In this document: one piece after another, positions 1-33,686 of the stretch
Position numbering within the stretch: position 1 is the first letter of the stretch
Layout: every line of letters begins with the position of its first letter
NCBI GenBank assembly: GCA_002269645.1
Contig: NIVC01000019.1
Coordinates: forward strand, 620,001 to 684,000
Origin: Macrostomum lignano
Lineage: Eukaryota
Direction: 5' to 3'
Length of the DNA: 64,000 nucleotides
Position numbers and translations under genes: made by a program
The notes under the pieces: model-generated
The model's database searches: none
Seen by the model: the letters and a program-made list of their open reading frames with translations, nothing else
Told to the model about the DNA's origin: nothing

Positions 1-3000
1 TGTACAGCGGCCGGTACACGGCTAAGTCAACGCCATCGTCCTGGCGGTACACCTCGCTGTCCGTGCTGCTGCTCACTTCAACGGCAGCTTCATCTTCAAA
101 GTCCTCCAAGTCGACGCCGCTGGCGCTGCTGTTGCTTCGGCGACGGCGATGCTGCTGCTGATGAAGAGTTGCTGCCTCGGACGATGGAGGCACCGGCTGC
201 TGCTGCTGAGGCCGCCGCACGGTCGCCGCTGCGGCCCGAGTTGCCTCATCAGGGTCGAACTGGTCAGAATTATTCTGCTGCTGCTCCTCGTTGGGTATAC
301 TGATGGCCTGCTGGCACATGGGGCAGGTGTCCCGCACGTGCAGCCACCTGAGCGAAGGTGGAGGTTATAGGTGAGGAAGGCTAAGAGATGAAACATTATC
401 CTCCCAATTTGAGGATCTTTGAATTTCTCATCCCGATTTGAAAATCTATAGAGTTTCTCATCCCGATTCGAGGATTTGTGTAGTTTCTCATCCCAATTTG
501 AGGATCTGTGTAGTTTCTCATCCCAATTTGAGGATCTGTGTAGTTTCTCATCCCAATTTGAGGATCTGTGTAGTTTCTCATCCCAATTTGAGGATCTGTG
601 TAGTTTCTCATCCCAATTTGAGGATCTGTGTAGTTTCTCATCCCAATTTGAGGATCTGTGAATTTCTCATCCCGATTTGAGGATCTGTGTAGTTTCTCAT
701 CCCGATTCGAGGATTTGTGAATTTCTCATCCCAATTTGAGAATTTATGAGCTTCTCATCCCAATTTGAGGATCTGTGAATTTCTCATCCCAATTTGAGGA
801 TCTGTGAACTTCTCATCCCAATTTGAGGATCTGTGAACTTCTGAACCCAATTTGAGGATCCGTGAACTTCTGAACCCAATTTGAGGATCCGTGAACTTCT
901 GAACCCAATTTGAGGATCTATAAACTTCTGAACCCAATTTGAGGATCTGTGAACTTCTGAACCCAATTTGAGGATCCGTGAACTTCTGAACCCAATTTGA
1001 GGATCTATAAACTTCTGAACCCAATTTGAGGATCATTTTTGTTCATGCAAACAAATTCCGCACACCTTCGCAAGCACAGCGGATGAAAATAATGCTGGCA
1101 GAGAGTCCGCTTAGCCCCGCTGAGCATGTCGCCGAAGCAGATGGCGCAGACATCGTTATGCTGACGCAGCTCCTCAGGTGTAGCATTGGGCAGCGAGCTC
1201 AGCCGCTTGGCCGCCAGGCGTCTCAGCAGGAACTTCCGCCAGCCGCTCTGCACTCGCTGCACAACGTTGAACCAGAAGTGCACAAGCAGGATGGCCAGGC
1301 TCAGGAAGCTCCAGTCGCGAGTGAAGAATTCCCTGACACCGAAGCAGACAATGACCAGGGCCACTAGCAGCTCCACTATTCGAACGCTCGACTTCACGTA
1401 GAACACCAAGTCTTCGAAGCTCTCCTCGGTGGGACCGGACCGGAAGTGGTCGTACAGAAAGAGGCAGTACAGCACCAGACTGCCTGCCGCCTGAGAAGGA
1501 CGGGATTGCAACTGTAGAATTGGGGATTTTCTGTTGGGATTTGGATTGGGATCGAAAGGCAGCCGGATGAAAATGGAACCCAGGCCAAGAAGCATCCCAA
1601 AGTCGTTTCAGAGTCGATGCAGGTAACACAGGTAAAACAGGAAAGAAGTGACTCTATGATGACTCTAAAACAACGAGATGTCGCGGTACAAGTCGCCAAA
1701 AAGTCGCTTAAGAATAAACTTGAGCCGTTTTATTGTCCGCAACTCTGAAACGACTCTGAGGCCGTTTCGGCTCTACAAACTCACTTGACACTTTAGCATT
1801 CTTGTCACGTCACGGTAACGTTTTCAACGGGGAATCGACAGAGTCCTATGCAGGTGAGCAAAAAGGAAGGAAGAGAATCATCTCTACATGAGGTGGGAGA
1901 CGTGTGAATGAGGCAAAAGTAATTGAGCTTCACCTGCAGAGCGGTCAGCAGGCAGCTAAGCGCAATTATCAGCAGCCAGAAGTCCGGCCTGAACAGGCGC
2001 AGCAGCCAGACGGTGAGGTAGACAGGCGCGCACAGCAGCACTGCGATGACAGCCAGGGCCCGTGCGTGGCCACCATACGGCGCCGACTGTACAGCGGCGC
2101 CGAGGTGCAGCAGCCTCGGGCCGGCGATCTCGTGCACCGAGTCAAGCAGCGAGGACACCAGAATGAAGGCTACAACGGTGACTAGGCTGGCCCATTGCGG
2201 AGTTCGCATTGTATGCGGCAGGTTGGTTTGCACCGCCACCAACAGGAAGGTGAAGCCCTCCGCCCAGCCGCGCTGAAGGCCTCCGGCAGCGTCGCCAGCG
2301 GCAGCCGCTGCCGCTTGATTGGCTAAGCCTCCGCCGCCACCGCCGCCATTGAGGAAAAGTTTAGTGCATAAAAGTACAAACCATGAGGCGTGAGACACGG
2401 TCACGCACAGGCCGAGAATGCACAGCGGGCTGGAGCAGCTGTCGGACAGGGCGCCCAGCAGTACGATGTCCAAGCCTGTCGCGGACGCCGATGCCGCCAT
2501 CCAGTGCTGAATGAGGCGAAGACTGAAGTTGGACAGCCAGAAGAGTAGCAGCTGTCGGGTCATGTTGTAGTCCTGGAGTGGCATAAGGCTCGGTTCAATG
2601 CCTGCGATGGGGTCTGGGATTCTTCAATGTTTGGATCTGGGATTCTTCAGTGTTGGGATCTGGGATTCTTCAGTGTTGGGATCTGGGATTCTTTAGTGTT
2701 GGGATCTGGGATTCTTCAGTGTTTGGATCTGGGATTCTTCAGTGTTGGGATCTGGGATTCTTCAGTGTTTGGATCTGGGGATTCTTCAGTGTTGGGATCT
2801 GGGATTCTTCAGTGTTGGGATCTGGGATTCTTCAGTGTTTGGATCTGGGGATTCTTCAGTGTTGGGATCTGGGATTCTTCAGTGTTTGGATCTGGGGATT
2901 CTTCAGTGTTGGGATCTGGGATTCTTTAGTGTTGGGATCTGGGATTCTTTAGTGTTGGGATTTGGGATTCTTTAGTGTTGGGATCTGGGATTCTTCAGTG

Positions 3001-6000
3001 TTGGGATCTGGGATTCTTTAGTGTTGGGATCTGGGATTCTTCAGTGTTGGGATCTGGGATTCTTTAGTGTTGGGATCTGGGAATTTTAATGTTGGGATTT
3101 TGGGATTTTTAGTGTTGGGATCTGGTATTCTTTGGTGTTAAGATCTGGGATTCTGAGTGTTGGGATCTCGGACTCTTATTGGTGGGATCTGGGATTTTAA
3201 ATATTGGGATTTTTGGATTCTTAGTGTTGGGAGCTTTGGAAATAGGATTAACATGCACCTTACAATAAGTCTCTATGGAGTCCTCACCTGCCACAAATGC
3301 AGCGGCACAGCCACCCAGCCGTCAGCCCAGATCATGCGGCCCAGTCTGTTAAACAGAATTCGAAGATCGGCCACAGCGCCAGGCAGCAGGCGAAGGGCCA
3401 GCATGGCGGCCAGGGCTCGGGTCAGGGCGGCGGCGGCGTTGTGCCACTGCCACGGCTCGCCGATAGCGGCGTCATCGGAGCCGAGCAGCCAGAGCTGGCC
3501 GAGTTGGCCGAGTGCCGGCAGGCAGAAGGCTGCCAAACCCATGCGGCCGAGGCCGCTCAGGCCCAGCAGGCGGCCAGCCAGAGCCGCCAGGGACAGCTGG
3601 CAGGTCACGTGACCGGCTGCGCCAGTAACCACCTGATTTGCGAAGTGATGCGATCATGAGAAATAGGATGAGAGAAGAGATGAAAACAGATGAGAGGGGT
3701 GAAGAGAGGGAGAGAAGATAAGAGAAAAGAGTAAAACCATTTGCAACTCAGTTGAAATTCATTTAAAATTCATTTAAAACTCATTCGAAACTCATTTGAA
3801 ACTAATCCGAAACTAATTTGAAACTAATTTGAAACTAATTTGAAACTCATTTGAAACCCATTTAAAACTCATTTGAAACTCATTTGAAACTCATTTGAAA
3901 CTCATTTGAAACTCATTTAAAACCCATTTAAAACTCATTTAAAACTCATTTGAAACTCACTTGAAACTCATTTGAAACTCATTTGAAATTCATTTGAAAC
4001 ACATTTGAAACTCATTTAAAACTCATTTGAAACTCACTTGAAACTCATTTGAAACTCATTTGAAATTCATTTGAAACACATTTGCAATTCACACCTACGA
4101 GGGCCAGCCCCCAAGGAGGAGAGAGTGTACATGACTGACGATTAGACAGTCAAGGCCACTGTAAACCCTGTGTGAGCGTGTGAATGAGTGTATGCCTGTG
4201 TACAGCATGTACTCGGGAGTCAAAGGGATTGACATGATTGGTTACCCCTCCTCTCCATCAGGCTGCTCACCTTTATTTCAGCCATTATTAATGAATTAAG
4301 TAGGGATGAAAAGCATTGCTCACCTGCCAATAGTGATCTGGATCGGCGATGGCCAAACTGGGGCAGCAGTGAATGACATAAAGCTGCGACAGGCGAGCCT
4401 GGGCGCACACAATGGCAGCTGCGGCCATGCAATTGTAAATGCCCAGCAGCTTATCAAATGGCATAAAGGCAATGCCAAAGAACACAAAGAAGCCTGTAGT
4501 GTTGGAATAATAAATGAGTACTAATTAGTATTTAAGTATAAAGAAATTGCTTCAATTGGTTTTGAAAACATGTTTGGGTTAATCAAATAAAGCAATTTAA
4601 TAGCCTATTAGTTTTATATACGAGGGCTGCTTAATAAGTTCGCGGAAAATCCCATTTCTGCTCATCGACATCGGATTTGCGTTTTTCAGCTCTTGACGGC
4701 AACCAAATAGCTTTCCTTTCAAGTTCTTCTTGATCCTGGGAAAGAGGAAAAAGTCAGAGGGTGCAAGGTCTGGTGAGTAAGCCGGATGTGGCAGCAGCGT
4801 CAGCTGAGTCGACTGGAGAACCTGCTGGGTCACCCTGGCGCGGTGAGCAGGTGCATTGTCGTGATGCAGCAGAATCCCGCGTTCTCTCGTCTTTGGACGC
4901 TGCTGAACGAGACTTTCGAGCACTTGCGTCAGACAGACGGTTGAGTACCATTCACCGGTCACTGTGGCGCCATCCTCGAGCAGCACGGGTGGCAGGATGC
5001 CGCATCGTCTGAAGAAAACCGCCGCCATGACTTTCCCGACGCTTCGCTCGCGACGAAACTTGACGGACGCGTCCTCTTCTCTTGCGATCCACTGCCGGCT
5101 CTGCTCTTTGGTTTCTGGGTAGTAAAAGTAGACCCAGGTTTCGTCACCAGTGATGATGTTATCCACCAGTTTTGAAGCTCCTGCGTCGAACTTTTAGAGC
5201 ATGAAGCTCGAGAACTCGACCCGAGCCTGCATCTGGTTCGGGTCCAGGTGGTGGGGGACCCAGCGCGCGGACACCTTCCTCATGCCGAGGTGATCGTGCA
5301 AGATGGAAATGATGCTTGAATCCGAAATCCTCACACTTTTCTCGAGCTCTCAAACTGTTACGCGTCTGTCCTCGTCCACCAGCCTCCGGACAGCGGTCAC
5401 AGTCGTGTCAGTAATGGCCACATTTGGACGACCTTCCCAGCCATCATTGTCCAGAGACACGGAGCTGCAGCAAAACCAAGCAAACCACCATTGTCAGAGA
5501 TGGGGCTTCATCGCCAAGGGCCGCTTGAAGCATCTGCTTGCACTCAGAAGCAGACTGGCCAAGACAATTGGACAAGAATTGTGACTCATCTATCTCAATC
5601 AATGAGACTCAGTGCAATCTGCGGAGTTTCACTGCTTCTTCGGCCACTGCATCGCAGCATTTTAGCCAATCAAGCTGAAATTTTGCACAGCTATTATGAA
5701 CATGTGGGGGAAGTATTGTGTCAAATTTTGTGAGAATTGGGCAAAAGAAAATGGGATTTTCCGCGAACTTATTAAGCTTATTAACTTATTAACCTCGTAC
5801 ATAGGCTATAAATGCATGGGGTAATCAATTAGAGCAATCTAATAGCCTATTAGTTTTATACATAGGCTACATGCATGGGTTGATCAATTAGAGCAATCTA
5901 ATAGCCTATTAGTTTTATACATAGGCTATATGCATGGGTTGATCAATTAGAGAAATCTAATAGCCTATTAGTTTTATACATAGGCTACATGCATGGGTTG

Positions 6001-7676
6001 ATCAATTAGAGCAATCTAATAGCCTATTAGTTTTATACATAGGCTATATGCATGGGTTGATCAATTAGAGAAATCTAATAGCCTATTAGTTTTATACGAG
6101 TACATAGGCTATATGTCCTTATTTGTGTCACTATGATTAATTAGACATTTTTTAACATATAAGCTGTCAAAACTATTGGCTTTAATATTTTGATTTAAAT
6201 GATATCATATCACAAAATGCTAATGAATTATTTATAAGGTATTTTTTAAGTTATTGTATAAATAACATAGGTAATATAATATCTACATGGTACTATGAAA
6301 ATAATGACTGCCAAAAATTATATGCTTTATATACTAAGGACTTTAAGGTTAGTTTATACCATATATATATATAATGCTAAGTATGTCTATATCAGGAAAC
6401 CTTTCTGTACATCAAAACTTCTATGGCAAAGGTCATCTTCCTAACTATAGATTCTATTAGTTTCTTACAATGGGTACCAGTCGTTTCGGTGACAAGTCAT
6501 TTTGGTGACAGACATTTCAGTGACAAATAGTCGTTTTGGTGACAAGTTGCTTTTGTGATGGACACATACTTTTGATAAAAAATTAAATATTTCATGAGTA
6601 TTGACATTTCAATGATAAGAGGCGCTTCATAATATTAGCTTGTAGATATTTTGTTAAGATTGATGTTTTATATTATATTTTAAATTTTTGTCAAAAGATT
6701 GATAAAATTGAAGAAAAGAAATCAAAATAATTATAATTGTTTTTTTTCCTATGCAGATCATTTTAAACTGTCCCAGAGTATTCAGATACATAGACCACCA
6801 TAAACCTAATTAAAGAATCCTCTTGAATTATTGACCATAAGAAAAGCAAGGATGTTCACAGGATGCTAGGCATGTTTGGATTGGAAAACAATTCAAAGGA
6901 CTGCAACTCTCTGTAATTGTAAATAAACAAAATTAAATAAAGCTACTTAACCATTTAAAAAAATTATAAAATTTTGGGTTCAATATCCCTTAATTAAGAT
7001 TTGCAAGTTAATTATCTGTTTAAAAACAGAATGGCTATCACTAAAAAGGTATTTTTCTAGTCACTGAAACGCCTTGTCACCGAAACGACTGTAATCCCTT
7101 ACAATTTGCCTATATCATAATTACAGAATCATTAGGCCCTATATTGTTTTAATCCTTCTAAATATTATTATTCAAAACTTATTATAGAATTATTTAATTA
7201 TGCAACCTTTTTTGACTACTGCCAGTGCACAGCAATCGAAAGCATGTAAGATATGTCAGAAATTTATCACGTGGAAATCATTACAAAAAGAAAAAATTAT
7301 AATATAATGAACTTACTAACATACCTGCAAATGAAACAATTAAAAAAAGAATTTTGGAAGCGATATCATCTGATATTTGATCTAATGTATCTGGGACAAT
7401 TGGTGGTAACATTGGACCAAGTGCATCGGCTTTGCTGGAAAATAAAAAGCTTTGAAATAAGTTGCAAAGAAAGATAGCCATCTGAGCGTGCGCAGGTAAC
7501 GTTCGTACCTCATTCTCATTGGTGATATTATTAGAATCTGTGACAAAAAAATTGAAAATCCGCGGGGGAAATTGAAAAGCATTTAAATAATACAGAGAAG
7601 GAACTCTCAGCAAAGAATCCAACATCTTACAGTTTTTTGTTAACAGCCAGCTAAAATACAAATTATGAAACAACAT
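1..7676 (-). CDS. RNF145: RNF145/TRC8-family multi-pass ER membrane RING-H2 E3 ubiquitin ligase, 6 coding exons, 3' end runs off the window
   Basis: Exons 7676-7325, 4493-4324, 3632-3288, 2572-1934, 1490-1066, 347-<1, all GT-AG with matching phases (1,0,0,0,2). Recognisable blocks: [52 protein letters not shown], and RING-H2 HNDVCAIC...[23 protein letters not shown]. The start codon is the least certain part. Confidence 0.9.
396..1032. repeat. 30/29-bp minisatellite (RNF145 intron 5)
   Basis: GAGGATCTGTGTAGTTTCTCATCCCAATTT grading to GAGGATCTGTGAACTTCTGAACCCAATTT. Confidence 0.95.
2612..3240. repeat. 23-bp minisatellite (RNF145 intron 3)
   Basis: GGGATCTGGGATTCTTCAGTGTT tandem copies. Confidence 0.95.
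3740..4085. repeat. 11-bp minisatellite (RNF145 intron 2)
   Basis: CTCATTTGAAA tandem copies. Confidence 0.93.
4621..5797 (-). mobile_element. Mariner (Tc1/mariner DD34D) transposon, 1177 bp, in RNF145 intron 1
   Basis: TIR CGAGGGCTGCTTAATAAGTTCGCGGAAAATCCCATTT at 4621; its reverse complement AAATGGGATTTTCCGCGAACTTATTAAGC...CCTCG ends at 5797. TA flanks at 4619-20 and 5798-99. Transposase motifs [25 protein letters not shown] with D-34-D spacing. Confidence 0.93.
4660..5560 (-). pseudogene. Disrupted mariner transposase
   Basis: In-frame stops at 5352-5350 (TGA in V*E) and 5196-5194 (TAA). Frameshift near 5495 between [10 protein letters not shown] and QWWFAWF. N- and C-termini look shortened relative to typical mariner transposases. 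Confidence 0.85.
5798..6115. repeat. 59-bp tandem repeat interrupted by the mariner
   Basis: CATAGGCTATATGCATGGGTTGATCAATTAGAGCAATCTAATAGCCTATTAGTTTTATA x about 5, plus a degenerate copy at about 4570-4620. Confidence 0.92.
6472..7098. mobile_element. Non-autonomous TIR element (MITE-like, 627 bp) with subterminal repeats
   Basis: Left end GGGTACCAGTCGTTTCGGTGACAAG, right end CTTGTCACCGAAACGACTGTAATCCC. Flanking direct repeat TTACAAT at 6465-6471 and 7099-7105. About 4 subterminal gtcgtttcggtgaca-like copies. Superfamily undetermined. Confidence 0.8.
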
Positions 7677-8050
7677 TTGCAGCGACACATTTTACACTAA
7701 TTTTTATAGACGCATGCTTCATAGAAAATCAGAAGTCAAAAGTCTGCTAGTCAAATATAACAGATTTATTCTTAGTACTTACACAAATTTAAGGTTATTA
7801 AAGTTTTTGAATGATAATAACAAAATATAGTCAGTAAGACTAAAAATTACCTAAAAAATATTTGTAAGGTATACTCTTTTTGAAATTTTACGCGATATTG
7901 TTGTTGCACGACCTGCATCTAGCCAGCTGCTACTTTTTTCACTTAATTTTTTTCTAAAGGGTGTTTGAATATCATCATTCAGAGGCCATCTTAAGTGGAT
8001 TGAAATCACTTCAGTAGTAAGCACACCACAGTATATACATACTGTAAATT
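7677..8050. promoter_or_regulatory. Putative bidirectional promoter/5' UTR region between RNF145 and DNAJA3
   Basis: Inferred from divergent start codons about 375 bp apart. The region retains CpGs, unlike the flanking first introns. Depends on the tentative DNAJA3 exon 1. Confidence 0.45.
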
Positions 8051-11000
8051 ATGCGTTGGAATGTACTTCTTCAGTTTAAATTCTCAATTAGTAAGTAAAC
8101 TGCATTTGATTGCTGTTTGTATTGTATCTGCATGGGATCAGTTTTTTTTTATTTATCTAAATATCTCATTCTATGATATTTGCTTATGTATTTATGTATT
8201 TTCCACTTTAGTTAAATGATTTGATTTTCTTACAAAGCTCATTGACCTAGTCTTAATGTTCTTATAATTGTGTATGAAATTAGGGCCTATGCTATGACCT
8301 ATGTAGGCATTTTTAGACTGTTGTTATTGTCATAACTTCTAGTAATCATATAAATAGTAAAAGTCGTTTTTTACAGTCAACACTTGTAACAAATACCCAA
8401 ATATATAAATTGAATAATAACTTGCTATATTGCCATAAAGACTCTTAAACTATGTAAAATACAAATTTAAATTATTATAGGCCTAGTTATTTTGCTAAGC
8501 CCCTTGGTGCTAAAGCCCCAACAACCATTTTTAGGACAGTCATTTTGGTAAGTAGCCAGTCATTTTGGTAATTAGCCAAAGTCATTTTGGCAAAGATAGG
8601 ATCTTTAGATCAATATTTTAGATCAAAAAGCTGTGCACAAATTTTGGCACATTTTAAAATTTAAAATTTTCAAAAAAATTTCAAAAGTTTTTTTGCACTT
8701 GAATTTTTAAACAATTTTTTATTGTTTTTTCCATATGCAAGTTGTGCAAGTTTGCCAGAGATATGACATTTTATAATAAAAGATCCTTTAATATCTTTAT
8801 ATTTATATATTTGAGTATTTTGAGTTAAGTTCAAAATAAACAATAATAAAACAAAGTATTAGTTTGAATTTCTTTCTTAATAATATATAAATATTTTGAT
8901 AGATTTTTGAAATAGGCCTATACAAATATCCCTATTAGGAAAAGTGACATTTTCATAAATAGTATCTAGTATGCTTTGAAAAATATTAACACACTTAGCA
9001 TATGCACTTCTAATGCAACAAGGCATGCCAAAGGTCTAAGGGACAGTGCACAAGAGCCACACTCTGGATCATGTAGTATACACCCAAAAATTCAGGCATG
9101 CACAGTTGGCATGTATCATTCCTAAGAAAATAGTATATGTGCATACCTAGCATTCACTTTATTGAATAACATGTAAAAGTTATTGTGAGGTAGATAAAAA
9201 TGAAAAAAGTTAATTTTTAAGAGTAAATTTCAAGCTTTCTGGTTTTGTCAAGCTTATAAAAAAGTATTTAAACAAATATTTTTGTGTATTGATTTTCCAC
9301 TATAAATAATATCACCAAAAAGCATAAAAATCAACCAAATTGTATGGTAATAAGGGTCTATTGTGCAATTTAAAAAAGGTCATTTATTGTTGCAACACTG
9401 GCATATTTTTGAAAATGGGTATGCACTACATTTTTTTGGTATATATTTGTAATTATTTAATTTTTGTCCAGGCATGCACCTAGCATGATCCTGCACCCAG
9501 CATGATCCTGAGACTATGGCACTAGAAGGGCTGAGGTATGGCTTGCCAGAAGGGCTAAGAGGCCATAATTTATAAGGTGACATGTATGTTAGGATTTCTT
9601 GGTGTACAACAAGGGTCCTACCATTTTTTAGCATATATTAGGGTGTACATAATATAATAAATACATTGTGTCAAATAACAATTTTTTTATATTTGCATAT
9701 AAACCCTACATACAAACAAGGTCTTGTCATATTTCTGGCATTAAACCTGGTATATACTAATACACAATCCAAACTATGGCTAAGAGGTAGCATGCCAATG
9801 GGATAGCATACAAAAGGGGTAGTACATACTTAAAAGATGGCACATAGAAGTGGAGCTTACTTGTGCTATTCCTCTGGCTATACCAAATTGCCAAAGGCTT
9901 TTAATACCTATATGGCATTAAGAAGATTGCCAATATATCACAACAGTTTTAGTTCAAGAAACATTTTTATAATAGCTAGTCTATAAATCCCTAGGCCAAT
10001 ATGAGAAGGCATGCAAAGTTATGCATTTTCAGCAAATTTTTGCTTAATGAAAAATATAAAACTGCTTATTAGCTGAATAATAAAAACTTATAAGACAATA
10101 AGGTAGACAGCTTTGGCAAGTTGGTCAAAGTTAATTCTATCATTTATTTAATATAATTTGCCTATTTGTCCCCTAGATTGGCATTTCTTGGTAATCATAG
10201 ATGCAGAATAAAGTATGTTATTCTTGGCATGCATCTGTGGACTTTGAGAATTTATTCCAATAAGGCAAAATAAAAATGTTAATAAAATAGACCTAACTAC
10301 AAAGTGATATTATGAAAACTATTACTTAAATGACAATTTACTAAATATTCCATTTTTTGACCTATATCCAAGGCTAAAAGGCTAATAATTTAGTAATAAA
10401 AAATAAATAAACTTTTTTAATATGTTGATACAAGCATATAATGATAACTTATTGTGGTCCTTATCAATCAACCTTGAAAAGTAAAATTGTCTTATGCTCA
10501 CTTAAGTGACAATGTGGTAATAGTCTTTTGGGGTCTTAAGGATAATTTTTGAATTGAGTGTATACTTAATATCATTATTCAATAGGGCATTCATTTTGCT
10601 TATGGCCAATGTATAGATATGTGTAATTTTATAATGTCTATACCTCAGCCACAAGCAACATAAAAACATGACTTTACTTTACAATCAATGAACTAGATAA
10701 TAAAGTGATATAACAATAAACATTAAAACATTATTAATTACCTTAACAAAGCATAAGTAAAATTTTATAAATAGACACTTAATGCCCTATATACAATACA
10801 CATTTGGTACCAAAAAGACCAAAATGGAAGACCCCTAAGTGACTATCAATGAAATAACTAGTCCCCCTTAAAGCATAAGATTATAGATTGTCTAAAAGTC
10901 ACTTGCTGGACCTCTTGGCTGCTATACCTCTATATTCTCCCTTGCTTCCATAGTCCTCTATGGAACCTAAAAACCTTAATATCTATAACTTCCCATAGTC

Positions 11001-14000
11001 ATATCTATAGCTATAGTGAAACTCCAATAGTGTTATGATTACATTTTTGTGTATACTACTGTACCAACAAACCATTTTTAGTATATTGGATTCTTTATTT
11101 CAATCAAAACATATATAAATGATATCTTACCCAAAATCAATAACAAATGTTAGTAAGTAAATTAGTGAGTAAACAGCAGTTTCCATGTCAGCATATTTTT
11201 TACTTGTTAGTTTCTGATTATAGACCTAATAAATTATAGGAAATTATAAGAATTATAAGAATAAATGAATCACTCCATACTCCATACAGGCCAAGCAACA
11301 TCGCTGGTATCAGTGGCAGCGGCAGGATCAACAGCCGCCATGCCAGTCAGCTGCCTGGCCCGCAGGCGGCTGCACAGCTCGCGGCAGCTGTTGAAACGGG
11401 ACTACTACGAAGTGTTGGGAGTCGGCCGGCAGGCCAACCAGAAGGACATCAAGAAGGCCTACTATGATTTGGCTAAGAAGCACCACCCGGATGTCAATAA
11501 GAATGATCCAACTGCCGCTAAGAGGTTCCAAGAGGTATCCGAGGCCTATGAGGTCTTGTCTGACGAGTCCAAGCGTAAACAGTACGACACCTTCGGCATG
11601 CACGGCCCCCAGGGACAGCAGCACCCTGGAGGTGGCGGCGGCGGCGGTGGTGGCTTCTCTGGCTTTGAGAACTACCAGGGTTCCATTGATCCCGAGGAAC
11701 TGTTCCGCCGCATATTCAGGTTTAATTAAAATCTATATTCGAATTGTTCTTCAGGTGTGGCTGTCCCTATACATCAGATTTTTCAGGTGTAGCTGTCCTT
11801 ATCCATCAGATTCTTCAGGTTTGGCTGTCCCTCTCCCTCAGATTCTTCAGGTGTGGCTGTCCCTATACATCAGATTCTTCAGGTGTGGCTGTCCCTATCC
11901 ATCAGATTTTTCAGGTGTGGCTGTCCCTATCCATCAGATTTTTCAGGTGTGGCTGTCCCTATTCATCAGATTCTTCAGGTGTGGCTGTCCCTATCCATCA
12001 GATTCTTCAGGTGTGGCTGTCCTCCTCCATCAGATTCTTCAGGTGTGACTATCCCTATACATCAGATTCTTCAGGTGTGGCTGTCCCTATCCATCTGATT
12101 CTTCAGGTGTGGCTGTCCCTATCCATCTGATTCTTCAGGTGTGGCAATCCCTATCCCTCAGATTCTTCAGGTGTGGCTATCCCTATCCATCTGATTCTTC
12201 AGGTGTGGCAGTCCCTATCCCTCAGATTCTTCAGGTGTGGCAGTCCCTATCCATCAGAATCTTTAACTAACATTATCTCAGAATTGTCAGTCTTCTTATA
12301 GCCTTATCCTTTATCCCGAATCCACTCTGCAGAGACGCTGGCTTCGACTTCGGTCGAGGCGGTGGCGGCGGCCGCGGCGGCGCCGGAGGGCCGGGAGCGG
12401 CGGAAAACATCTTCGGCTTTGCACCGGCAAGGTAAAATTCACTCCTTGTTTGGCTTTCGAAGATGCAATCTGAATGACCTGAACCTGAACTAACCCGGCC
12501 AATTATTCAGGGAGGTGACGCTGAATCTCACCTTCGAGGAGGCGGCTCGCGGCGTCAACAAAGAGGTGACAGTTGGGGTCAAGGACACCTGCGTCAGGTG
12601 CTCGGGCAGCGGCAGCGAGCCGGGATCGAAGCCAATGGTCTGCCCGCAGTGCAACGGCACCGGCATGGAGTCGCTAACCACTGGCGCTTATTTTATGCGA
12701 ACAACCTGCCGCAGATGCGGCGGCGCCAGGCAGATTGTTAAAAATCCCTGCGTAGATTGTCGGGGCGCCGGACAGACTACTCAGCGAAAGCGACTCGTCA
12801 TACCTGTACCTGCTGGGGTCGAGGCTGGGCAGACACTGCGAGTTCCCGTTGGGCGGCAAGAGATCTGGGTCAATATCCAGGTGAGTCAGGGTTTTCTGGG
12901 TCTGGGTCACTATCCAGGTGAGTCAGGGTTTTCTGGGTCTGGGTCACTATCCAGGTGAGTCAGGGTTTTCTGGGTCTGAGTCATTATCCAGATAAGTTTT
13001 GCTGGGTCTGGGTAAAGGTTGTTGTCTATCTGGGTCAGGGTTGGTGCTTTTTTGGGTTAGGGTTGGTTCTTATCTGGGTCAAGATTGTTGTCTACCTGGG
13101 TCAGGGTTGGTGCCGATCTGGGTCAGGGTTGGTGCCTACCTGGGTCAGTTATTCCGATTCACTATGCGACTTTCGTCCGCCCGCAGGTGGAGCGGAGCCG
13201 GAACTTCCGCCGTGAAGGCGCGGACATCCACTCGGACGTGGACGTGTCAATCAGCCAGGCGGTGCTTGGTGGTAAAGTGCGGGTACCGGGACTCTACGAG
13301 GACCTGACCATCGCTATCCCGCCGGGCACCGGGTCGCATGAGCGAATCCGCCTGCCGGGCAAGGGCATCGCCAGGTTCAACTCCTTCGGCTACGGCGATC
13401 ACTACATTCACGTGCGGGTCCGCGCCCCGCGCCGCCTCACGGAGGCTCAGCGCGCCCTCATGCTTGGATTCGCCGAATTCGAGGGTCCTGCAGACCGGAC
13501 AAGGGGCAGCGTTGACGGGGTGACTCAGGCGCCCGAGTCTGGTAGGTGAAGGGGGAGTTGAAAGTCTTTGTTCCCATTGTAGAAATCCCATATCAGTCTT
13601 TGTTCCCAGTGTAGAAATCCCATATCAGTCTTTGTTCCCAGTGTAGAAATCCCATATCAGTCTTTGTTCCCAGTGTAGAAATCCCATATCAGTTTTTGTT
13701 CCCAGTGTAGAAATCCCATATCAGTCTTTGTTCCCAGTGTAGAAATCCCATATCAGTCTTTGTTCCCAGTGTAGAAATCCCATATCAGTCTTTGTTCCCA
13801 GTGTAGAAATCCCATATCAGTCTTTGTTCCCAGTGTAGAAATCCCATATCAGTCTTTGTTCCCAGTGTAGAAATCCCATATCACTCTTTGTTCCCATTGT
13901 AGAAATCCCATATCAGTCTTTGTTCCCAGTGTAAAAATCCAATATCAGTCTTTGTTCCCATTCTGGAAATCCGGTGCCAGTCTTTGTTTGTTTCCAGTGT

Positions 14001-16123: not shown

Positions 16124-16765
16124 TCAGAAGCTGTCAAAGCCGGCCCGCAATTCGTCCAGCGCCCAGTCGATGTCGGCTTCGAACAGGCGCCGAACCTCCG
16201 GAGTCCAGCAGCCGCTCTGGCCAAGGACTGCAGCCAGGGCCTCCAGGAATGGCCGCCGGATCAGGCCGAAGTGCTCCGGCTCGAAGCCGCAGAACAACCG
16301 GTGCGTCTTGCCGACGCTGCGAAGTCGCTCGGACGCGCTCGAATCGCAGCGGCGGTCTCCTTCGGCCGAGCCGCCGATTGCCAAGTCCAGCAGCTCCATC
16401 ACGGCCGCGGCGTGTCGGCGAAGCTGCGGATTCCCAGCGTCGATTTTGTCCTCGGTGGCGTAGAAGCTGCTGAACAAGCCCAGCAGGTCGGGGCGCCGCT
16501 GGAACAGGCGCAGGAACATGTCCACCCCGGTGTCGGTGAGGCGGCTCCGCACCACCGACCAGGCCGACCGCTGCTGGCTGCCGTCGTCATCGTCGATTTC
16601 GTCGTAGCCGTCGTCGTTCGTCTCCTCCGACGGCTCCAACGCTTCAACTTGGTGACTGTCGACGGAGTCGTCTTTGACCTGCCGGCGTTGCTGCTGTGCA
16701 TACAGAGGCCGATCGTGACAACTGACCGCTGCCGATGAGGCGGCAGAGGAGGCTGCGCAGCCCAT
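16124..16765 (-). CDS. Globin with N-terminal acylation motif (globin X-like membrane-anchored globin), intronless, 213 aa
   Basis: MGCAAS start (Gly2/Cys3/Ser6), acidic extension, then globin fold: MFLRLFQRRPDLLGLF (CD1 Phe), LRRHAAAVM (E7 His), VGKTH (F8 His), FEPEHF. Confidence 0.9.
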   Translation of the reverse strand: MGCAASSAASSAAVSCHDRPLYAQQQRRQVKDDSVDSHQVEALEPSEETNDDGYDEIDDDDGSQQRSAWSVVRSRLTDTGVDMFLRLFQRRPDLLGLFSSFYATEDKIDAGNPQLRRHAAAVMELLDLAIGGSAEGDRRCDSSASERLRSVGKTHRLFCGFEPEHFGLIRRPFLEALAAVLGQSGCWTPEVRRLFEADIDWALDELRAGFDSF

Positions 16766-23398: not shown

Positions 23399-25420
23399 AT
23401 TTTGCATATTTCATCTTACAACAATAACAGAATGTAGATTTACTGTTTATGTGAATGCGTGCGTTATAGCTACACTGGCGACAAAAAACGTACATGTATT
23501 TTCAGTGTCATGTTTATCAGCTGCAGAGTGCATGCTTCTAAAAAATTACATGTATTGTATATCTACATGTACAGAATACAGAAAAGTATATATAGGTAAA
23601 TAAATCTTTATGCACGAAGGTAAATGCAAAGAACCTAGCTAGCTAGTTCTGTGTATTTCGGCCCTTTTTTCCAACAATGAAAATTACAGGCATACAATAT
23701 GATACAAAAACATGACCTTGAAGTGGAATTCATTTATTTGTATTTTTCATGTATACATGCAGAACAGCTTTTGAAATTTAAAAGGACAGTAAAGCACGCT
23801 TACATTACATATGTGTACCATATGATAGTAACAGAATTTCATCAAAATTTAACCGCAATCAGATGTTTCACTATTATCATTCTGTCAGAATATTTAATTA
23901 TTAACTCATTTTTTATTCGAGTACAGACTGGCTAATATAAGTGCATTAATGAAAATCGTGCTTAACACTGCATTTAATGTACATGTAGAATAGAAAGAGA
24001 TATAGTGATATAGAATTCAGGACCAACAGTACAGAACAGTAAAACAGTAATGAGGCAAACAAATGAAATAGCAAACAAATGAATTTTTCCGATGCTCGTA
24101 TATATACTACTTTTAATACTTTAACAAACAATGCGACACAATGCCTATACTGTGCATAGTATTGGTGACAATCAGTAAGGAAGTGTGTTTTTAAAACTTT
24201 TGCTAAAATTAAATAGACTCTAAGGTGGCCGTGAGTGGTGTTGTTTTATTGTTTCTATTTTCGGGTGTGGTTAGGTCGTATAACAGTACAATTTTAAATT
24301 ATTCGTCAGTCATAGCTGAATCAAACTCGAAGTATGACTCGAAATGAATGACTACTGACTACTGTAGGCTATTCGCGGTAATATTGAAACTAATCATTAT
24401 ATTTATTTACCACTTAAGCTTTTACTGATTTTACTGCTATTAATATTGATTGATAATAAAAATTGCGTACAATATAATAGTATAGATAATTTAGCTTTAG
24501 CTGTTAAGTTATTTTTAACCAATCTTTTAAATTTAAATTTAAAGCTTTAAAGCCTAAATTTGTACGCCAACTTTGAAAGGGGCATTTGTACGCCGGAATT
24601 TTATGGCATATATGTAACCCTCCAGAATCTGGTATTCAAGTAAGGATAAGATGATATCATATTTTTAGATTTTTCAGACAGATATATTCTTTCAATCTTT
24701 CAAGATAATCAAGATTCAATTGTGATTTGAGACTAAGTCTAATTAGCATCTAGTAAACCTATTTATACTATTCTATCTATTAATATTGATGCTAACATTT
24801 TTATTTGTTAAATGTATATAATGACAATAATAAAACTAAAACTAAAAGGAAAAACAATGATTATTTAATATTTTGCTTGTTAATAACTTGATTTTTATCA
24901 AATATCAAAATGATAATATTAGTCACAAACAGTCACATGGTCACAAATCTTGACTTTTTGAGATCTCAAAACTAAGATTGAGAAAAGTGCCAAAGTTTAA
25001 ATCATTGAGATCAAGATTAAGATCTTGTCCAACTCTTACTTTTATCAATTCTTTTTGTCTATGGCCCATTATCAGATGCTATACCTTGAATTTTGTTAGC
25101 CAAGTAATATACATTTACATAAAATTTTAAAGATAGGCCTTTCAAAACTAATATGACTATATAGACTTCTATAAGATATTATAAATAGACATTTTATGAC
25201 TTATTATAAATATAGTTGCCAATAAATTAAAAATTCAATAGTCTGGGTATTGCCATAAATTGCCAAAAATTTATGATGCCAAAAATGCCAAAGTGGTAGT
25301 GGTATAATAAATATATATAATGATTGCATTTTTTGATTATTTTGAGATAAAAAATTAAATTTTAATCTAAACCATAAATTACAGATGGTTGCACATAGAG
25401 ATTCTATAATATAAGACAGA

Positions 25421-28400
25421 ATGATTAATATGGAGAATGCAGAAGAGAACCTTGAGCCTGCAACAGTAACACTAATTGGTAAATGCCCTTTTTCACAATA
25501 CCATTTTTACCAAGTTAATAAAAATAATATAAATTTAATGCTTTCTCTTTTAACCAATAAAGCTTATAGAGGCATTGGATTGCAACCACCAAGAAGCAAG
25601 AAAAAATGTGAGGCTTTGTAACTTTCTATCTAATATTATCTTTCTGGTTCTAAGAGTCAACTGTTTTTTATCCACTAAATTTAACATTGACAGCGGAAAG
25701 CAAAAAAGCCAAATGGAAGGTGCTATTCTGCCATGGACAGGACAAGAAAATGTCTACAATGGAAATTATCAGCCAAGATGGCAATCCTGTATGGGATACT
25801 ACGGCTACTATGTAAGTAGCATTTGATGTACATATATATATGGATTCTTGGAACTCAAATTGTCTAATACATTCGCAATCAAGCTCAAGGTATTTGATAA
25901 CTATAGCGTAGTAAAGAGTTTAGAGGAGTTTAGATGGCATGTGTTGCCATGCAAACTTTTGGACTTGTGCATATTGTGCATGAAAATTCACCCCAAGGCT
26001 TGTCGTGCTATGCAATTATTGATGCTTTTCTAAATGGCTGAGCTTTAAGGCACATGGTATGCAACCTGTTTGAGCACCCTGTATGAGCACCCTGTGTGAG
26101 CACCCTGTGTGAGCACCCTGTGTGAGCACCCTGTGTGAGCACCCTGTTTGAGCGCCCTGTGTGAGCACCATGTGTGAACACCCTGTGTGAGCACTATGTG
26201 TGAACACCCTGTGTGAGCACTATGTGTGAACACCCTGTGTGAACACCATGTGTGAACACCTTGTGTGAGCGCCCTGTGTGAGCGCCATATCTGAGCACCC
26301 TGTGTAAGCGCCCTGCTGAAATCTCAATTCAACAAATAATCATCTTCCACCACCCGCCCCAGTCCCGTTGGCAACTCCTACGAGCCGCTGGTGCTCCTGC
26401 TGCACTACCGGGATGCCCCAGTCGGACAGGTGATCATCCCATGGACTCAGGTGCCGGACAAAGCCACGGCTGTCGGCCAGCCGGAGCGACTCGGCGAGCT
26501 GGAGGCCGTCCGGAAGAATCCGGAGCCGTCAGGTGGCCTCTATTACAACTGCTGGATTGAGACCTACCGGCCTGTCAGTCAGCAGCCCCGGAAACCGCCT
26601 GGCTTGCTCAAACGGTTAGCAATGCTTAACAATAATTTTACAATCCATTTTGAGCAATGAAAGTAGCGCTAGGCTCTGGTCTCTGGAGTGTGAAAGTGGC
26701 ACAGTTATGGAATTTGGGGAAGATGGAATTTTGGGAATATGGATTTTGGGGAATATGGAATTTGGAGAAGATGGAATTTGGGGAACATGAATTTTGGGGA
26801 ATATGGATTTTGGGGAATATGGATATTGGGGAATATGGATTTTGGGAAATGTGGTCAAGTGGGATATAATTGGAGAATAGGAAATCCTGGGAAATGTAAA
26901 CCGAGACTCCTTCTGGTATTCAATTCTCATAATTTATAATTTGACGCATTCTCACACGCCCAGGCTCAGTCTGTCGCGCAGCAAGCTATCAGCTAGCAGT
27001 GCCAGCATCGCCGAGGACAGCCGGCGTCAGGACGGCACCCTGGAGCAGCAGCCGGAGCAACAGCAGGCCGCTTCGAGCCGCAAGGCCACGGTGCCAACTG
27101 TCAAGAAGTTGAAGCGCCGGTTGTTCAACCGCGGCGGCAAATCCAGCGGCAAAGACGCCGTTGACTCGAACGGCCCCGTCTCCAAGGCCGTCTCCATGGG
27201 CAACCTGTCGGGCTCCTCGTCCTTAAGCGCCGCGCCGCTGCAGACGCAGCAGCAACAGCAGCAGCCGTCATCGTCAGCCGCATATTCGCCGTCGCCCTCG
27301 CCGTCGGCGTCGCCGGCCTCGCTGCAGCGCCACCCGATGGCGCGGCCGCACTCGCTGCACAACCTGGCCCTCGACCAGCCGATGGAGCGGCCAGCCGAGC
27401 GGCTGCAGAAATCCCAGCAGCAGCAGCAGCAGCTCGACCTCCTGGCAACTTCGCCAAATTCCCAGCTGAGCCGGAGCCGCAGCGCCGCCTGCCTGTTCAC
27501 CGGGCCGACCTATCCGTCGGTTGACACGGACCGGCCGCTGCCGGAGGTGCTCCAGCTCGAGCCCGGCCAGGCTCCCGCACTCGGCGGCCAGCGCGTCACC
27601 GTCCGCGGTGTCGCCCTCGCCTTGTCGGCCTCGGATTTGATCGGCGCCTCGCTGGCCGGCGTGCCCTGCCGGGCGGTGGCCTTCGTCAGCCCGCAGGAGG
27701 TTCTGCTGACCGCGGGCACGGCGCCTTCGGCTGGTGCCGCAGGACCGGTCGAGCTGGTCACCGTCAGCGCCGGTTGCGTCCGGTCTGAGCAAACTTTCAC
27801 GTACCTGGCCGCCAGCGCTAAGGGTGAGGTTTGGGATTATCCGATCAGCCTTCCCCTAATCCATCAGTCACCTTCCCCTAATCCATCAGTCACCTTCCCC
27901 TAATCCATCAGTCACCTTCCCCTGATCCATCAGTCACCTTCCCCTAATCCATCAGTCACCTTCCCCTAATCCATCAGTCACCTTCCCCTGATCCATTAGT
28001 CACTTTTCTCGTCCCGCAGCCTCACTACCTCCCCCTGCCAGCGGCATCGCTCGCAGCCCGTCGCTCAACCAGCTGCCGTTCGGCGGGGCTTCGGCCGGCG
28101 CCTCAGGCGGCTCCTCCGTCATGCCGGAGGTTCACCACGCCCGGTCCAGCAGCCTGGAGGCTGCCGCGGCTATTCAGCCAACATCATCGGCGCAGCTGAT
28201 GCCCGCGCCTGCGCCCGCCCTGGCAGCTGCTTCCGCGTCGAAATCGCCGGCTTCGAATATTAAAAAGAGCCGCAGCGTGTGGGACCTGCGGCTGGGCCGG
28301 TGAGCTGGGATCTCAGCGGATCTTAAGGCATTTGGTGCTGAATGGTCACAGATTAGAATTGAACCTCTCCCAGATATCCAGGTGCTCGGCCAGCCTCTCA

Positions 28401-30439: not shown

Positions 30440-31715
30440 TGCTGGGAAGGATGAAGGTTGTAGGGATGCTGGGAAGGATGATGATTGTAGGGATGCTGGG
30501 AAGGATGAAGGTTGTAGGGATGCTGGGAAAGATGCAGACTGTAGGGATGCTGGGAAGGATGATGATTGTAGAGATGCTGGGAAGGATGCAGATTGTAGGG
30601 ATGCTGGGAAGGATGAAGGTTGTAGGGATGCTGGGAAGGATGATGATTGTAGGGATGCTGGGAAGGATGAAGGTTGTAGGGATGCTGGGAAAGATGCAGA
30701 CTGTAGGGATGCTGGGAAGGATGATGATTGTAGGGATGCTGGGAAGGATGAAGGTTGTAGGGATGCTGGGAAGGATGATGATTGTAGGGATGCTGGGAAG
30801 GATGAAGGTTGTAGGGATGCTGGGAAGGATGATGATTGTAGGGATGCTGGGAAGGATGAAGGTTGTAGGGATGCTGGGAAAGATGCAGACTGTAGGGATG
30901 CTGGGAAGGATGCAGACTGTAGAGATGCTGGGAAGGATGCAGATTGTAGGGATGCTGGGAAGGATGCAGATTGTAGGGATGCTGGGAAGGATGAAGGTTG
31001 TAGGGATGCTGGGAAGGATGATGATTGTAGGGATGCTGGGAAGGATGAAGGTTGTAGGGATGCTGGGAAGGATGATGATTGTAGGGATGCTGGGAAGGAT
31101 GAAGGTTGTAGGGATGCTGGGAAGGATGATGATTGTAGGGATGCTGGGAAGGATGAAGGTTGTAGGGATGCTGGGAAGGATGATGATTGTAGGGATGCTG
31201 GGAAGGATGAAGGTTGTAGGGATGCTGGGAAGGATGATGATTGTAGGGATGCTGGGAAGGATGAAGGTTGTAGGGATGCTGGGAAGGATGATGATTGTAG
31301 GGATGCTGGGAAGGATGAAGGTTGTAGGGATGCTGGGAAGGATGATGATTGTAGGGATGCTGGGAAGGATGAAGGTTGTAGGGATGCTGGGAAAGATGCA
31401 GACTGTAGGGATGCTGGGAAGGATGATGATTGTAGAGATGCTGGGAAGGATGCAGATTGTAGGGATGCTGGGAAGGATGCAGATTGTAGGGATGCTGGGA
31501 AGGATGATTGTAGGGATGCTGGGAAGGATAATGATTGTAGGGATGCTGGGAAGGATTGATTGTAGGGATGCTGGGAAGGATTGATTGTAGGGATGCTGGG
31601 AAGGATGCAGATTGTAGGGATGCTGGGAAGGATGCAGACTGTAGGGATGCTGGTAAAGATGAGGACTGTGGGGATGTTGGAAAGAATGCAGATTGTAGGG
31701 ATGCTGGCAAGGATG
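30440..31715. repeat. 27-bp minisatellite with variant units
   Basis: ATGCTGGGAAGGATG followed by AAGGTT, ATGATT, CAGATT or CAGACT, then GTAGGG. Confidence 0.96.
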
Positions 31716-32684
31716 AGAACTGCTATACAATACTACTTCATCGGTTTAATTACCAAAATTTGCTAAGCTGTGTATATCGCATTATCTCCCGTATAATCTC
31801 AACTATTAATTGTTTTACCTGTGCTCCATCAGTCAGAGATAACTAGAGTAGATGCTAGTCTTTTCCTCATTATTCCGCTTGTCTATCTGGTTTCATTGGA
31901 TTGATGGTTATAAGCATTGCTTTTATTGTATACCTTTTTGGTTGGTTTTTCATTATTTTCAACTTGTTCACAAGCTGCCATTCCAAATTCAAAAGTCAAG
32001 TTGGAACTTCAGGCTGTGTCGTTATTTCGATTTTGTAACTTTCTTTAACTGTGTTTTTTCTAAGCCTTATGTTGGTTTCCTGACATTCCATGTTTTTTTT
32101 GCTTTTTAAAATCGGCTTTTCCTTTCGCTGCTACTGCTAGTAGGCAGTCTGGCATCAGCTTCGCAGCTTGTGACGACACGCCAACAAGTTCAGAGCGTTT
32201 CTCGCTTCTGCAATAATATTTTATCTGACATTAAACGGTTGCACCTTGTGAATATGCTGGCCAACTGTAAACATATATTTTTGACGCTTTAAACCACAGC
32301 TATTTTTTTACTTTGCCTAATAATTAAATTCTGCTAATTATCATATAACTGGCTAAGCAAAATGAATGACATTCTGTGTGTAGGAATTCTGTTTCACTTT
32401 GCCCTGCTTGGCCAGCTGATTGTTTCGGCAGGTCTTTGTTTTAATTATGTTTTTATTTTTTATAAAAAGCTATCTCCAAAATCACAAGGGACCACTGGTG
32501 TTAACTATTTCTTTCATATATAATTGCACATTTTTTAATCAGAATTGATGCTTCAATATGTGCCCAACATTATCTCGTGTCCTTATATGAACCATTATTT
32601 ACATATTTTCAACACTTCCGTTGAGTCTGCGTGGACTACAAAAAGCTTCTAGACATTTGCAATCTTGAATTTGATTGGACAATT

Positions 32685-33686
32685 GTTCTGAAGTTCAATA
32701 AGACAGGGTCCTGAAGTTCATAGAGACAGGGTCCTGAAGTTCATAGAGACAGGGTGCTGAAGTTCATATAGACAGGGTCCTGAAGTTCATAGAGACAGGG
32801 TGCTGAAGTTCATATAGACAGGGTCCTGAAGTTCATAGAGACAGGGTCCTGAAGTTCATAGAGACAGGGTGCTGAAGTTCATAGAGACAGTGTCCTGAAG
32901 TTCATAGAGACAGGGTCCTGAAGCTCATAGAGACAGGGTCCAGAAGCTCATAGAGACAGGGTCCTGAAGTTCAATAAGACAGGGTCCTGAAGCTCATAGA
33001 GACAGGGTCCTGAAGTTCATAGAGACAGGGTCCTGAAGTTCATAGAGACAGGGTCCTGAAGTTCATAGAGACAGGGTCCTGAAGTTCATAGAGACAGGGT
33101 CCTGAAGCTCATAGAGACAGGGTCCTGAAGCTCATAGAGACAGGGTCCTGAAGTTCATAGAGACAGGGTCCTGAAGTTCATAGAGACAGGGTCCTGAAGT
33201 TCATAGAGACAGGGTCCTGAAGCTCATAGAGACAGTGTCCTGAAGTTCATAGAGACAGTGTCCTGAAGTTCATAGAGACAGGGTCCTGGAGCTCATAGAG
33301 ACAGGGTCCTGGAGTTCATAAAGACAGGGTCCTGAAGTTCATAGAGACAGGGTCCAGAAGTTCAGAGAGACAGGGTCCAGAAGTTCATAGAGACAGGGTC
33401 CTGAAGTTCATATAGACAGTATCCTGAAGTTCATAGAGACAGGGTCCTGAAGTTCAATAAGACAGGGTCCTGAAGTTCATAGAGACACGGTCCTGAAGTT
33501 CATAGAGACAGTGTCCTGAAGTTCATAGATACAGTGTCCTGAAGTTCATAGAGACAGGGTCCTGAAGCTCATAGAGACAGTGTCCTGAAGCTCATAGAGA
33601 CAGTGTCCTGAAGTTCATAGAGACAGGGTCCTGAAGTTTATAGAGTCAGGGTCCTGAAGTTTATAGAGTCAGGGTCCTGAAGTTCA
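32685..33686. repeat. 23-bp minisatellite
   Basis: GACAGGGTCCTGAAGTTCATAGA tandem copies. Confidence 0.95.

Follow-up and report, generated by a model that had tools for sequence, protein, structure and literature searches.

A sharply bounded, almost CpG-free stretch beside a divergent promoter region of Macrostomum lignano, with germline methylation as a tentative explanation

The DNA examined here is a 64,000-nt stretch of the genome of the flatworm Macrostomum lignano (assembly GCA_002269645.1, Mlig_3_7; contig NIVC01000019.1:620001-684000), hereafter referred to as the window, and the positions given below are window positions. A TRC8-like RING gene on the minus strand and DNAJA3 on the plus strand lie head to head in this window, with their start codons 3.7 kb apart, and most of the gap between them is taken up by AT-rich DNA that is almost devoid of CG dinucleotides (CpG), referred to here as the CpG desert (assembly coordinates NIVC01000019.1:628056-631289). 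The loss of CpG is real and AT content does not explain it. We tentatively suggest that this desert, and two shorter CpG-free stretches in the same window, are the product of methylation and deamination that have long acted in the germline on sharply confined AT-rich DNA beside promoters, an explanation that we regard as quite possible rather than probable. Its main rival is an origin of the desert in transposon-derived DNA.

A single CG, at 8365, occurs in the interval 8056-11301 (3246 nt, 29.2% GC), where 69.1 are expected from the C and G frequencies (observed/expected ratio, o/e, of 0.014), and the single CG reported in the preliminary description of this DNA is thus borne out by the count. 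GpC occurs 110 times in the same interval (o/e 1.59) and is unaffected, so the depletion is specific to CpG. No other CG-free run in the window is as long as that from 8365 to 11302 (2937 nt), which ends as abruptly as had been described: CGs return at 11302, with 12 of them within the next 100 nt, in an exon of the DNAJA3 orthologue. If the desert had the CG rate of the remaining AT-rich unique DNA, about 54 CGs would be expected in it, and the probability of at most one CG is 1.8e-22 at a control rate of o/e 0.79, which pools the AT-rich and intermediate unique DNA of the window. The two AT-rich controls named in the preliminary description, 23400-24590 and 31750-32700, hold 23 CGs (o/e 0.83) and 18 CGs (o/e 0.62), respectively, and AT content alone is therefore insufficient, as it had argued. 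Its broader statement that AT-rich DNA elsewhere is not depleted holds for these controls, but a second desert (24595-25693) starts right after the first of them. The non-tandem DNA of the whole window has a CpG o/e of 0.87, and unique 200-nt windows with less than 40% GC show a two-state CpG count, either near expectation or zero.

The CpG desert and the gene parts that surround it are the following:

8056-11289, no strand: CpG desert, AT-rich (29% GC), unique and non-coding, between the divergent promoter region and the first coding exon of DNAJA3.
11290-11719, plus strand: first coding exon of DNAJA3/Tid1, with ATG at 11340 and a 20-aa presequence followed by the J domain; GC 59%, CpG o/e 0.70.
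7325-7625, minus strand: exon 1 of the TRC8/RNF139-like gene for a RING membrane protein, coding, AT-rich, with 8 CG (o/e 0.87) and the splice donor CAG/GT.
4321-4497, 3288-3635, 1811-2575, 1064-1493 and 2-346, minus strand: remaining TRC8-like exons, from a tblastn map of the protein P0243.
7626-8054, no strand: CpG-keeping AT-rich patch, a candidate divergent promoter, with 5 CG (o/e 0.53), directly upstream of the TRC8-like start codon.
6098-7324, no strand: promoter-proximal part of intron 1 of the TRC8-like gene, AT-rich and CpG-free except for the ends of an inserted transposable element and two CGs beside the exon.

On its left side, the desert is bounded by a wider CpG-keeping patch (7237-8054, about 0.8 kb) that consists of TRC8 exon 1 and about 430 nt upstream of it. 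The preliminary description had placed a putative promoter at 7680-8055 and had stated that it keeps its CpGs, which agrees with the count of 6 CG (o/e 0.70) there and with the position of the patch 7626-8054, where a promoter is expected. The patch 7237-8054 does not qualify as a CpG island of the vertebrate type (GC above 50%, o/e above 0.6, at least 200 bp), its GC content being 30-36% and its o/e 0.53-0.87. Intron 1 of the TRC8-like gene (4498-7324) contains a mariner, a 59-mer tandem array, a hAT-like miniature inverted-repeat transposable element (MITE) and CpG-free, AT-rich unique DNA.

We give next to no credence to chance, low complexity, a cryptic tandem repeat, an organellar insert or a contaminant as the source of the desert. 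The remaining long CG-free gaps in the window are tandem arrays with a CG-less unit, which would speak for a repeat, but the probability of so few CGs is about 2e-22 and a decayed tandem array was rejected, since Tandem Repeats Finder (TRF) detects only repeats of 54 nt and 36 nt in the desert, autocorrelation reveals no periodicity in it and a comparison by nhmmer finds it unrelated to the adjacent 59-mer array. A coding, organellar or contaminant origin, whether as a nuclear mitochondrial insert, DNA of a bacterium with the Mollicutes code, DNA with the ciliate code or a decayed transposable element gene, was rejected on the absence of any signal from open reading frames (ORFs) or Pfam. In the desert, no ORF exceeds 85 aa under the standard code, none stands above shuffled sequences under 12 genetic codes, and there is none under mitochondrial, Mollicutes or ciliate codes. 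A six-frame Pfam scan of 7100-11300 returned no family at E <= 1, and thus no remnants of transposable element proteins, and the whole window gave no structured RNA match in Rfam (gathering thresholds) and no tRNA match with ARAGORN. The AT-rich block is also contiguous with a genuine flatworm exon.

CpG-free unique DNA is found at two further places. Around the candidate divergent promoter, the segments 6098-6472, 6561-7049 and 7098-7236 of TRC8 intron 1, from which the MITE ends are excluded, together contain 1 CG against 16.3 expected (P = 4e-5). The other place is the second desert:

24595-25693, no strand: second unique-sequence CpG desert, 26% GC, 0 CG against 18.9 expected, P = 3e-7.

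This second desert comes after a CpG-keeping AT-rich kilobase (23400-24594) and before a plus-strand gene with exons at 26941-27903 and further positions. NCBI annotates no gene from 20.4 to 30.4 kb of the window, and the homeologue of this plus-strand gene is annotated as a 612-aa product. The window thus has three CpG-free unique stretches, which belong to two AT-rich blocks. Each is close to a gene 5' end, and two of them flank one divergent promoter. No such stretch was found upstream of a globin ORF (o/e 0.93) or of other ORFs in the window, nor in 31 kb of homeologous DNA. The latter comes from NIVC01000089.1:983481-1012997, a collinear homeologue of the window between 29 and 58 kb, with an identity of about 90-93% and differing array lengths. 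A partial genome duplication is known for the DV1 line, and the collinear homeologous copy fits it.

If germline methylation and deamination made the deserts, then 8056-11289, its counterpart in TRC8 intron 1 and the stretch at 24.6-25.7 kb would long have carried constitutive CpG methylation in the germline, with nearly all other unique DNA unmethylated. Deamination of 5-methylcytosine (5mC) would have turned the CpGs of the deserts into TpG and CpA until virtually none were left, and the patch of promoter and exon 1 and the downstream GC-rich exons would have been largely spared. Near-complete methylation or weak T:G mismatch repair may lie behind the unusually efficient decay. Targeting would be promoter-proximal rather than repeat-directed, and these stretches would be, or once have been, methylated. 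According to published reviews, both DNMT1 and DNMT3 are retained in M. lignano, where 5mC occurs at a low level (PMC11292947, PMC9246332, PMC10658182), and this we count in favour of methylation. The CpG-specific, sharply bounded and two-state nature of the loss, its placement at gene 5' ends and the hypermutability of CpG in the tandem arrays of the window all support methylation decay.

The last of these arguments comes from the comparison of substitution rates. Tandem arrays detected by TRF make up 38% of the window, with periods of 9-71 nt, and fill most introns. Their CpG o/e is 0.24, and 32 of the 42 arrays have no CpG in the consensus unit. When array units were compared with their consensus, transitions were found in 19.0% of CpG sites and in 3.5% of other C/G sites (5.5-fold). 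The comparison with the homeologue, which is about 91% identical to the window, covers 29-58 kb of it and lies outside the deserts, gave transitions at 28.7% of CpG sites vs 10.3% of other C/G sites in arrays (2.8-fold), and at 4.4% vs 3.6% in unique DNA (1.2-fold). Bulk unique DNA is thus without CpG hypermutability, in line with the low reported methylation, and repeats are hypermutable. An excess of CpG transitions, which the preliminary description had made a test of its proposal, is accordingly present in the arrays and absent from bulk unique DNA. As for the desert itself, about 3.9 new CpGs would be expected to have arisen there by transition since the homeologue split if none had been removed, and one CpG is present in total, which is weak evidence of continuing removal (P about 0.1).

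Further support for methylation decay comes from four observations. GC-rich exons up to about 4.5 kb from the promoter have an o/e of 0.69 (63 CG vs 91 expected) and distal exons one of 0.95 (215 vs 227), a small effect from two genes only. The GC content of the desert (29.2%) is about 1.5 points under that of the neighbouring CpG-keeping AT-rich DNA, and the conversion of about 70 CpGs would remove about 2 points. The two remaining observations concern transposable elements and the relics of one of their motifs:

6472-7097, no strand: hAT-like MITE with imperfect terminal inverted repeats (TIRs; GGGTACCAGTCGTTTCGGTGACAAG...) and an 8-bp target-site duplication (TSD), CTTACAAT, at 6464-6471 and 7098-7105.
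4629-5777, minus strand: mariner-type element within intron 1 of the TRC8-like gene, with inverted ends at 4629-4657 and 5749-5777; CpG o/e 0.87.
8365-8366, no strand: the sole CG of the desert, within AAGTCGTTTT, which resembles the MITE subterminal motif AGTCGTTTYGG.
8537-8593, plus strand: MITE-motif relic, three tandem copies of AGTCATTTTGGYAA, equivalent to the subterminal motif AGTCGTTTCGGTGA after replacement of its two CpGs by CpA and TpG.

The change undergone by the MITE motif inside the desert, from AGTCGTTTCGG to AGTCATTTTGG, is the one that CpG transitions would produce, and the relic at 8537-8593 is consistent with such decay, although its copies are in tandem and count as about one independent event. 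The mariner, which retains a truncated transposase ORF (4597-5166; Pfam Transposase_1 and DDE_3), presumably provides a young-insertion comparator, in which CpGs are kept as expected if their loss takes time. The 59-mer array beside it (5798-6097) has a 50-nt segment in common with 4568-4618.

Several findings weigh against methylation decay. TG (198, o/e 1.21) and CA (217, o/e 1.26) are abundant in 8056-11301, as the preliminary description had stated, but there is no excess over AT-rich controls: the strand-averaged TG/CA o/e of 1.24 in the desert falls within the range of 1.20-1.28 found in CpG-keeping AT-rich controls, and a value of about 1.4 would be expected after the recent conversion of about 60 CpGs. 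The missing TpG/CpA excess weakens the case for methylation decay, although age could have erased it. The CG/(TG+CA) ratio falls from 0.43 in unique DNA to 0.0024 in the desert, and an equilibrium at the latter value needs a CpG loss about 40-180 times faster than that of unmethylated DNA. The required rate exceeds the roughly 3- to 6-fold acceleration seen in the arrays of this genome, and it is also above decay of the mammalian type. Moreover, CC/GG is raised in all three CpG-free stretches (8056-11301, 24595-25693 and 6098-6472; o/e 1.22-1.40) compared with three of four CpG-keeping AT-rich segments (0.71-0.90), with the MITE intermediate (1.15). This is not predicted by CpG decay and hints at a different sequence class. 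Over the roughly 95 kb of M. lignano DNA covered (window and homeologous DNA together), the effect is limited to two AT-rich blocks, too few for a general rule anchored at transcription start sites. In addition, the unique TRC8 intron 1494-1810 has a CpG o/e of 0.99, and the DNAJA3 exons beside the desert keep dense CpGs (o/e 0.70, 1.28 in the glycine-rich exon, 1.00 and 1.10). In view of these exons and of the unique TRC8 intron, ordinary, canonical gene-body methylation does not fit the pattern. Thus, of the gene-body domain restricted to the 5' end that had been proposed in the preliminary description, the 5'-proximal placement is hinted at by our data, whereas the gene-body part does not agree with downstream exons that keep their CpGs, up to an o/e of 1.28.

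The main rival explanation is that the desert is an accumulation of old, non-autonomous transposons or other AT-rich mobile DNA, from families that had lost their CpGs through methylation or mutation elsewhere, so that it was CpG-depleted on arrival. Its proximity to the promoter would then result from an insertion preference like that of MITEs instead of an epigenetic compartment anchored at a transcription start site; we consider this explanation unlikely, though far from negligible. The difference in CC/GG between the deserts and nearby AT-rich DNA and the absence of a TpG/CpA excess both agree with it. So does the neighbouring MITE, which is AT-rich, with a CpG-poor interior and six of its seven CGs within terminal motif copies (subterminal AGTCGTTTCGGTGACA repeats), and relics of its motif lie within the desert, at 8365 and 8537-8593. 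GCATGC and related short motifs also recur: about 0.7 copies of GCATGC are expected in the desert and six are present (9024-10232), frequently in the form AGGCATGC; TGGCA/TGCCA is enriched too. This recurrence may reflect a dispersed short repeat, as a mobile origin would have it, or intronic elements of the (U)GCAUG type.

The structure of the desert tells against such an insert. A repeat search and a TIR/TSD scan revealed no TIR/TSD and no long terminal repeat structure in the desert; the TIR/TSD scan is weak, as it also missed the MITE 6472-7097, the two ends of which show indel differences, whereas the repeat search did recover the inverted ends of this MITE. One inverted pair of 16 nt (7229-7244 with 8101-8116) is of a kind that chance can produce. 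No transposase or reverse transcriptase remnant was detected in any of the six frames, and no second copy of the desert was found in the 64-kb window (self-BLAST) or in the 31 kb of homeologous DNA. The likeness to the MITE stops at the short motif, with no similarity beyond it in Smith-Waterman comparisons evaluated against shuffles. A search of metagenomes with the MITE terminal motif yielded 34 matches, close to the chance expectation; they lay in GC-rich contigs of prokaryotic appearance without further similarity. As TRC8 exon 1 demonstrates, this block is AT-rich by nature. Finally, an unmethylated CpG-free insert would regain about four CpGs in the time since the homeologue split, so it must either be recent, yet without intact ends, or have been kept CpG-free by methylation, in which case this explanation merges with that of germline methylation.

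Two other processes could have removed the CpGs. The first is an active, CpG-directed hypermutation, by methyltransferase-catalysed deamination or a genome defence resembling repeat-induced point mutation (RIP), which we regard as improbable. It would account for a near-total loss, far past the equilibrium rates derived from the arrays or the homeologue, and for the sharp boundaries and all-or-none state. However, the duplicated partner sequence that would serve as a RIP-like trigger was not seen in the window, TpA is not raised in the desert (o/e 0.98), there is no strand asymmetry and the TpG/CpA excess is absent. Active CpG-directed hypermutation of this sort is not known to occur in animals. 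The second process, purifying selection against CpG in promoter flanks, either to stop methylation from spreading to the shared promoter or to avoid CpG-reading factors, appears more improbable still. The CpG-free stretches do adjoin the promoter on both sides, and the missing TpG/CpA footprint is compatible with selection, but the effect per site would be minute, and the complete clearing of about 60 sites in neutral-looking AT-rich DNA is implausible. Furthermore, CpGs are retained in the majority of the other 5' flanks of genes in the window, such as the region upstream of the globin ORF (o/e 0.93).

The gene models on both sides of the desert rest on homology. The first coding exon of DNAJA3 contains a Pfam DnaJ domain (E = 8e-28), and the zinc-finger and C-terminal exons are 57-60% identical to metazoan DNAJA3. 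In a HMMER search of 1.84 billion representative proteins, the minus-strand ORF 7284-7688 matched one protein only, P0243 (753 aa, E = 3e-53), which has a Pfam TRC8_N domain (3e-63) from residue 2 and was placed in the window as six minus-strand exons. TRC8 exon 1 has 94% protein identity to P0243 and most other exons 96-99%; the high-scoring segment pair for exon 4 has 84%, a value probably lowered by its extension past the exon. ORF 1808-2584 gave no match in a homology search, although the tblastn map makes it TRC8 exon 4.

The transcriptional status of the desert can be considered from the junction with DNAJA3. GC content jumps from 29% to 59% precisely at an AG (11288-11289) that is preceded by a pyrimidine-rich tract, and this AG looks like a cis- or trans-splice acceptor. 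Spliced leader (SL) trans-splicing occurs in about 39% of M. lignano genes (PMC5730564), and the AG could accordingly serve trans-splicing, in which case the desert would be an outron. ATG 11340 is probably the true start of DNAJA3, because the presequences of three M. lignano DNAJA3 paralogues are equally short, with only about 24 residues ahead of the J domain compared with 20 here. An upstream in-frame coding mini-exon at about 8052-8091 was rejected as unnecessary for the same reason. The desert could therefore be an intron in the 5' untranslated region, an SL trans-splicing outron or a plain intergenic spacer. Further downstream in DNAJA3, a 37-mer tandem duplication at 12864-12991 spans an exon end and its splice donor (TATCCAG/GTGAGT), creating at least three equivalent candidate donors.

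Other features of the window were noted in passing. Kilobase-scale strand-pure arrays of purines (AGAGAGGGGGAGAATGAGAGA) and pyrimidines (CTCTCCCCA) are located at 34471-36455 and 45739-46574, with a GC skew near +1 and -1, respectively, and are potential triplex- or H-DNA-forming tracts. The single-exon ORF 50157-51284 has an exact match in NCBI, and its 90%-identity cluster also contains the M. lignano protein PAA91410.1. The 377-aa 'protein' annotated by NCBI at 30451-31584 on the plus strand is an open frame through a 27-mer tandem array (MKVVGMLGRMMIVGML...). This model is probably spurious, and the surrounding real gene lacks annotation on the contig. The globin ORF mentioned above (16124-16765, minus strand) is intronless, encodes 213 aa and matches Pfam Globin at 1e-10; its exact sequence is absent from the protein collection and it is apparently unannotated. 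The product begins with MGCAAS, possibly an N-terminal acylation motif as in globin X.

The pattern can be compared with several known systems. In invertebrates with mosaic methylation, a bimodal CpG o/e is used to infer methylation, as in molluscs, annelids, insects and tunicates, and the methylated part of canonical mosaic genomes consists of housekeeping gene bodies, including exons, with an o/e of about 0.3-0.6. The window differs from these genomes in that CpGs persist in its exons and in a unique intron (o/e 0.7-1.3) and 1-3 kb of AT-rich non-coding DNA is depleted to 0.014. It resembles them in having two sharp CpG states in one genome, a CpG-specific loss and a genome in which DNMT1 and DNMT3 are kept (PMC11292947, PMC9246332). 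In the arthropods Daphnia, Apis and Nasonia, gene-body methylation is highest at exons 2-4, and about 77% of the highly methylated sites are exonic (PMC6097596). As in this 5'-biased methylation, the signal reported here lies within the first few kilobases, spares the patch of promoter and first exon and is followed by a weak rise in exon o/e, from 0.69 to 0.95; unlike in arthropods, it is overwhelmingly non-coding, and the assignment of the desert to a gene body is putative.

The CpG-keeping patch of about 0.8 kb at the promoter and exon 1, between CpG-depleted flanks, recalls the layout of vertebrate CpG islands. Unlike in vertebrates, the patch has only 30-36% GC, the surrounding 'sea' extends over only a few kilobases and the rest of the DNA is CpG-replete (o/e 0.87), which is the inverse situation. 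A likeness to repeat-directed methylation and to fungal RIP-like processes is seen in the CpG-poor arrays with their excess of CpG transitions and in the near-total CpG loss, but the desert is without detectable repetition, transposable element hallmarks, TpA excess or a duplicated partner.

Flatworms are usually treated as methylation-poor or methylation-free. A 2022 review states that the genome-wide pattern of methylation is not known in any free-living flatworm (PMC9246332). The sharp scar described here gives exact coordinates at which to learn what the methylation machinery of flatworms targets. If the deserts turned out to be CpG-less mobile DNA, the result would be an ordinary one, still useful for the repeat annotation of a genome so rich in arrays. 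If they are methylated promoter flanks, they would represent a new animal methylation layout and a natural measure of how mutable 5mC is in a lineage whose toolkits for DNA repair and methylation are reduced. We put forward, as a speculative and rather unlikely proposal, that M. lignano, in whose genome CpG hypermutability is otherwise almost absent, may keep small, sharply bounded and constitutively germline-methylated compartments on the non-coding flanks of some promoters, in which CpG decay would run tens to more than 100 times faster than elsewhere in the genome, and to completion. Were this true, it would establish a promoter-flank 'inverse CpG island' architecture undescribed for any animal, and would open a window on the use of DNMT1 and DNMT3 in a free-living flatworm.

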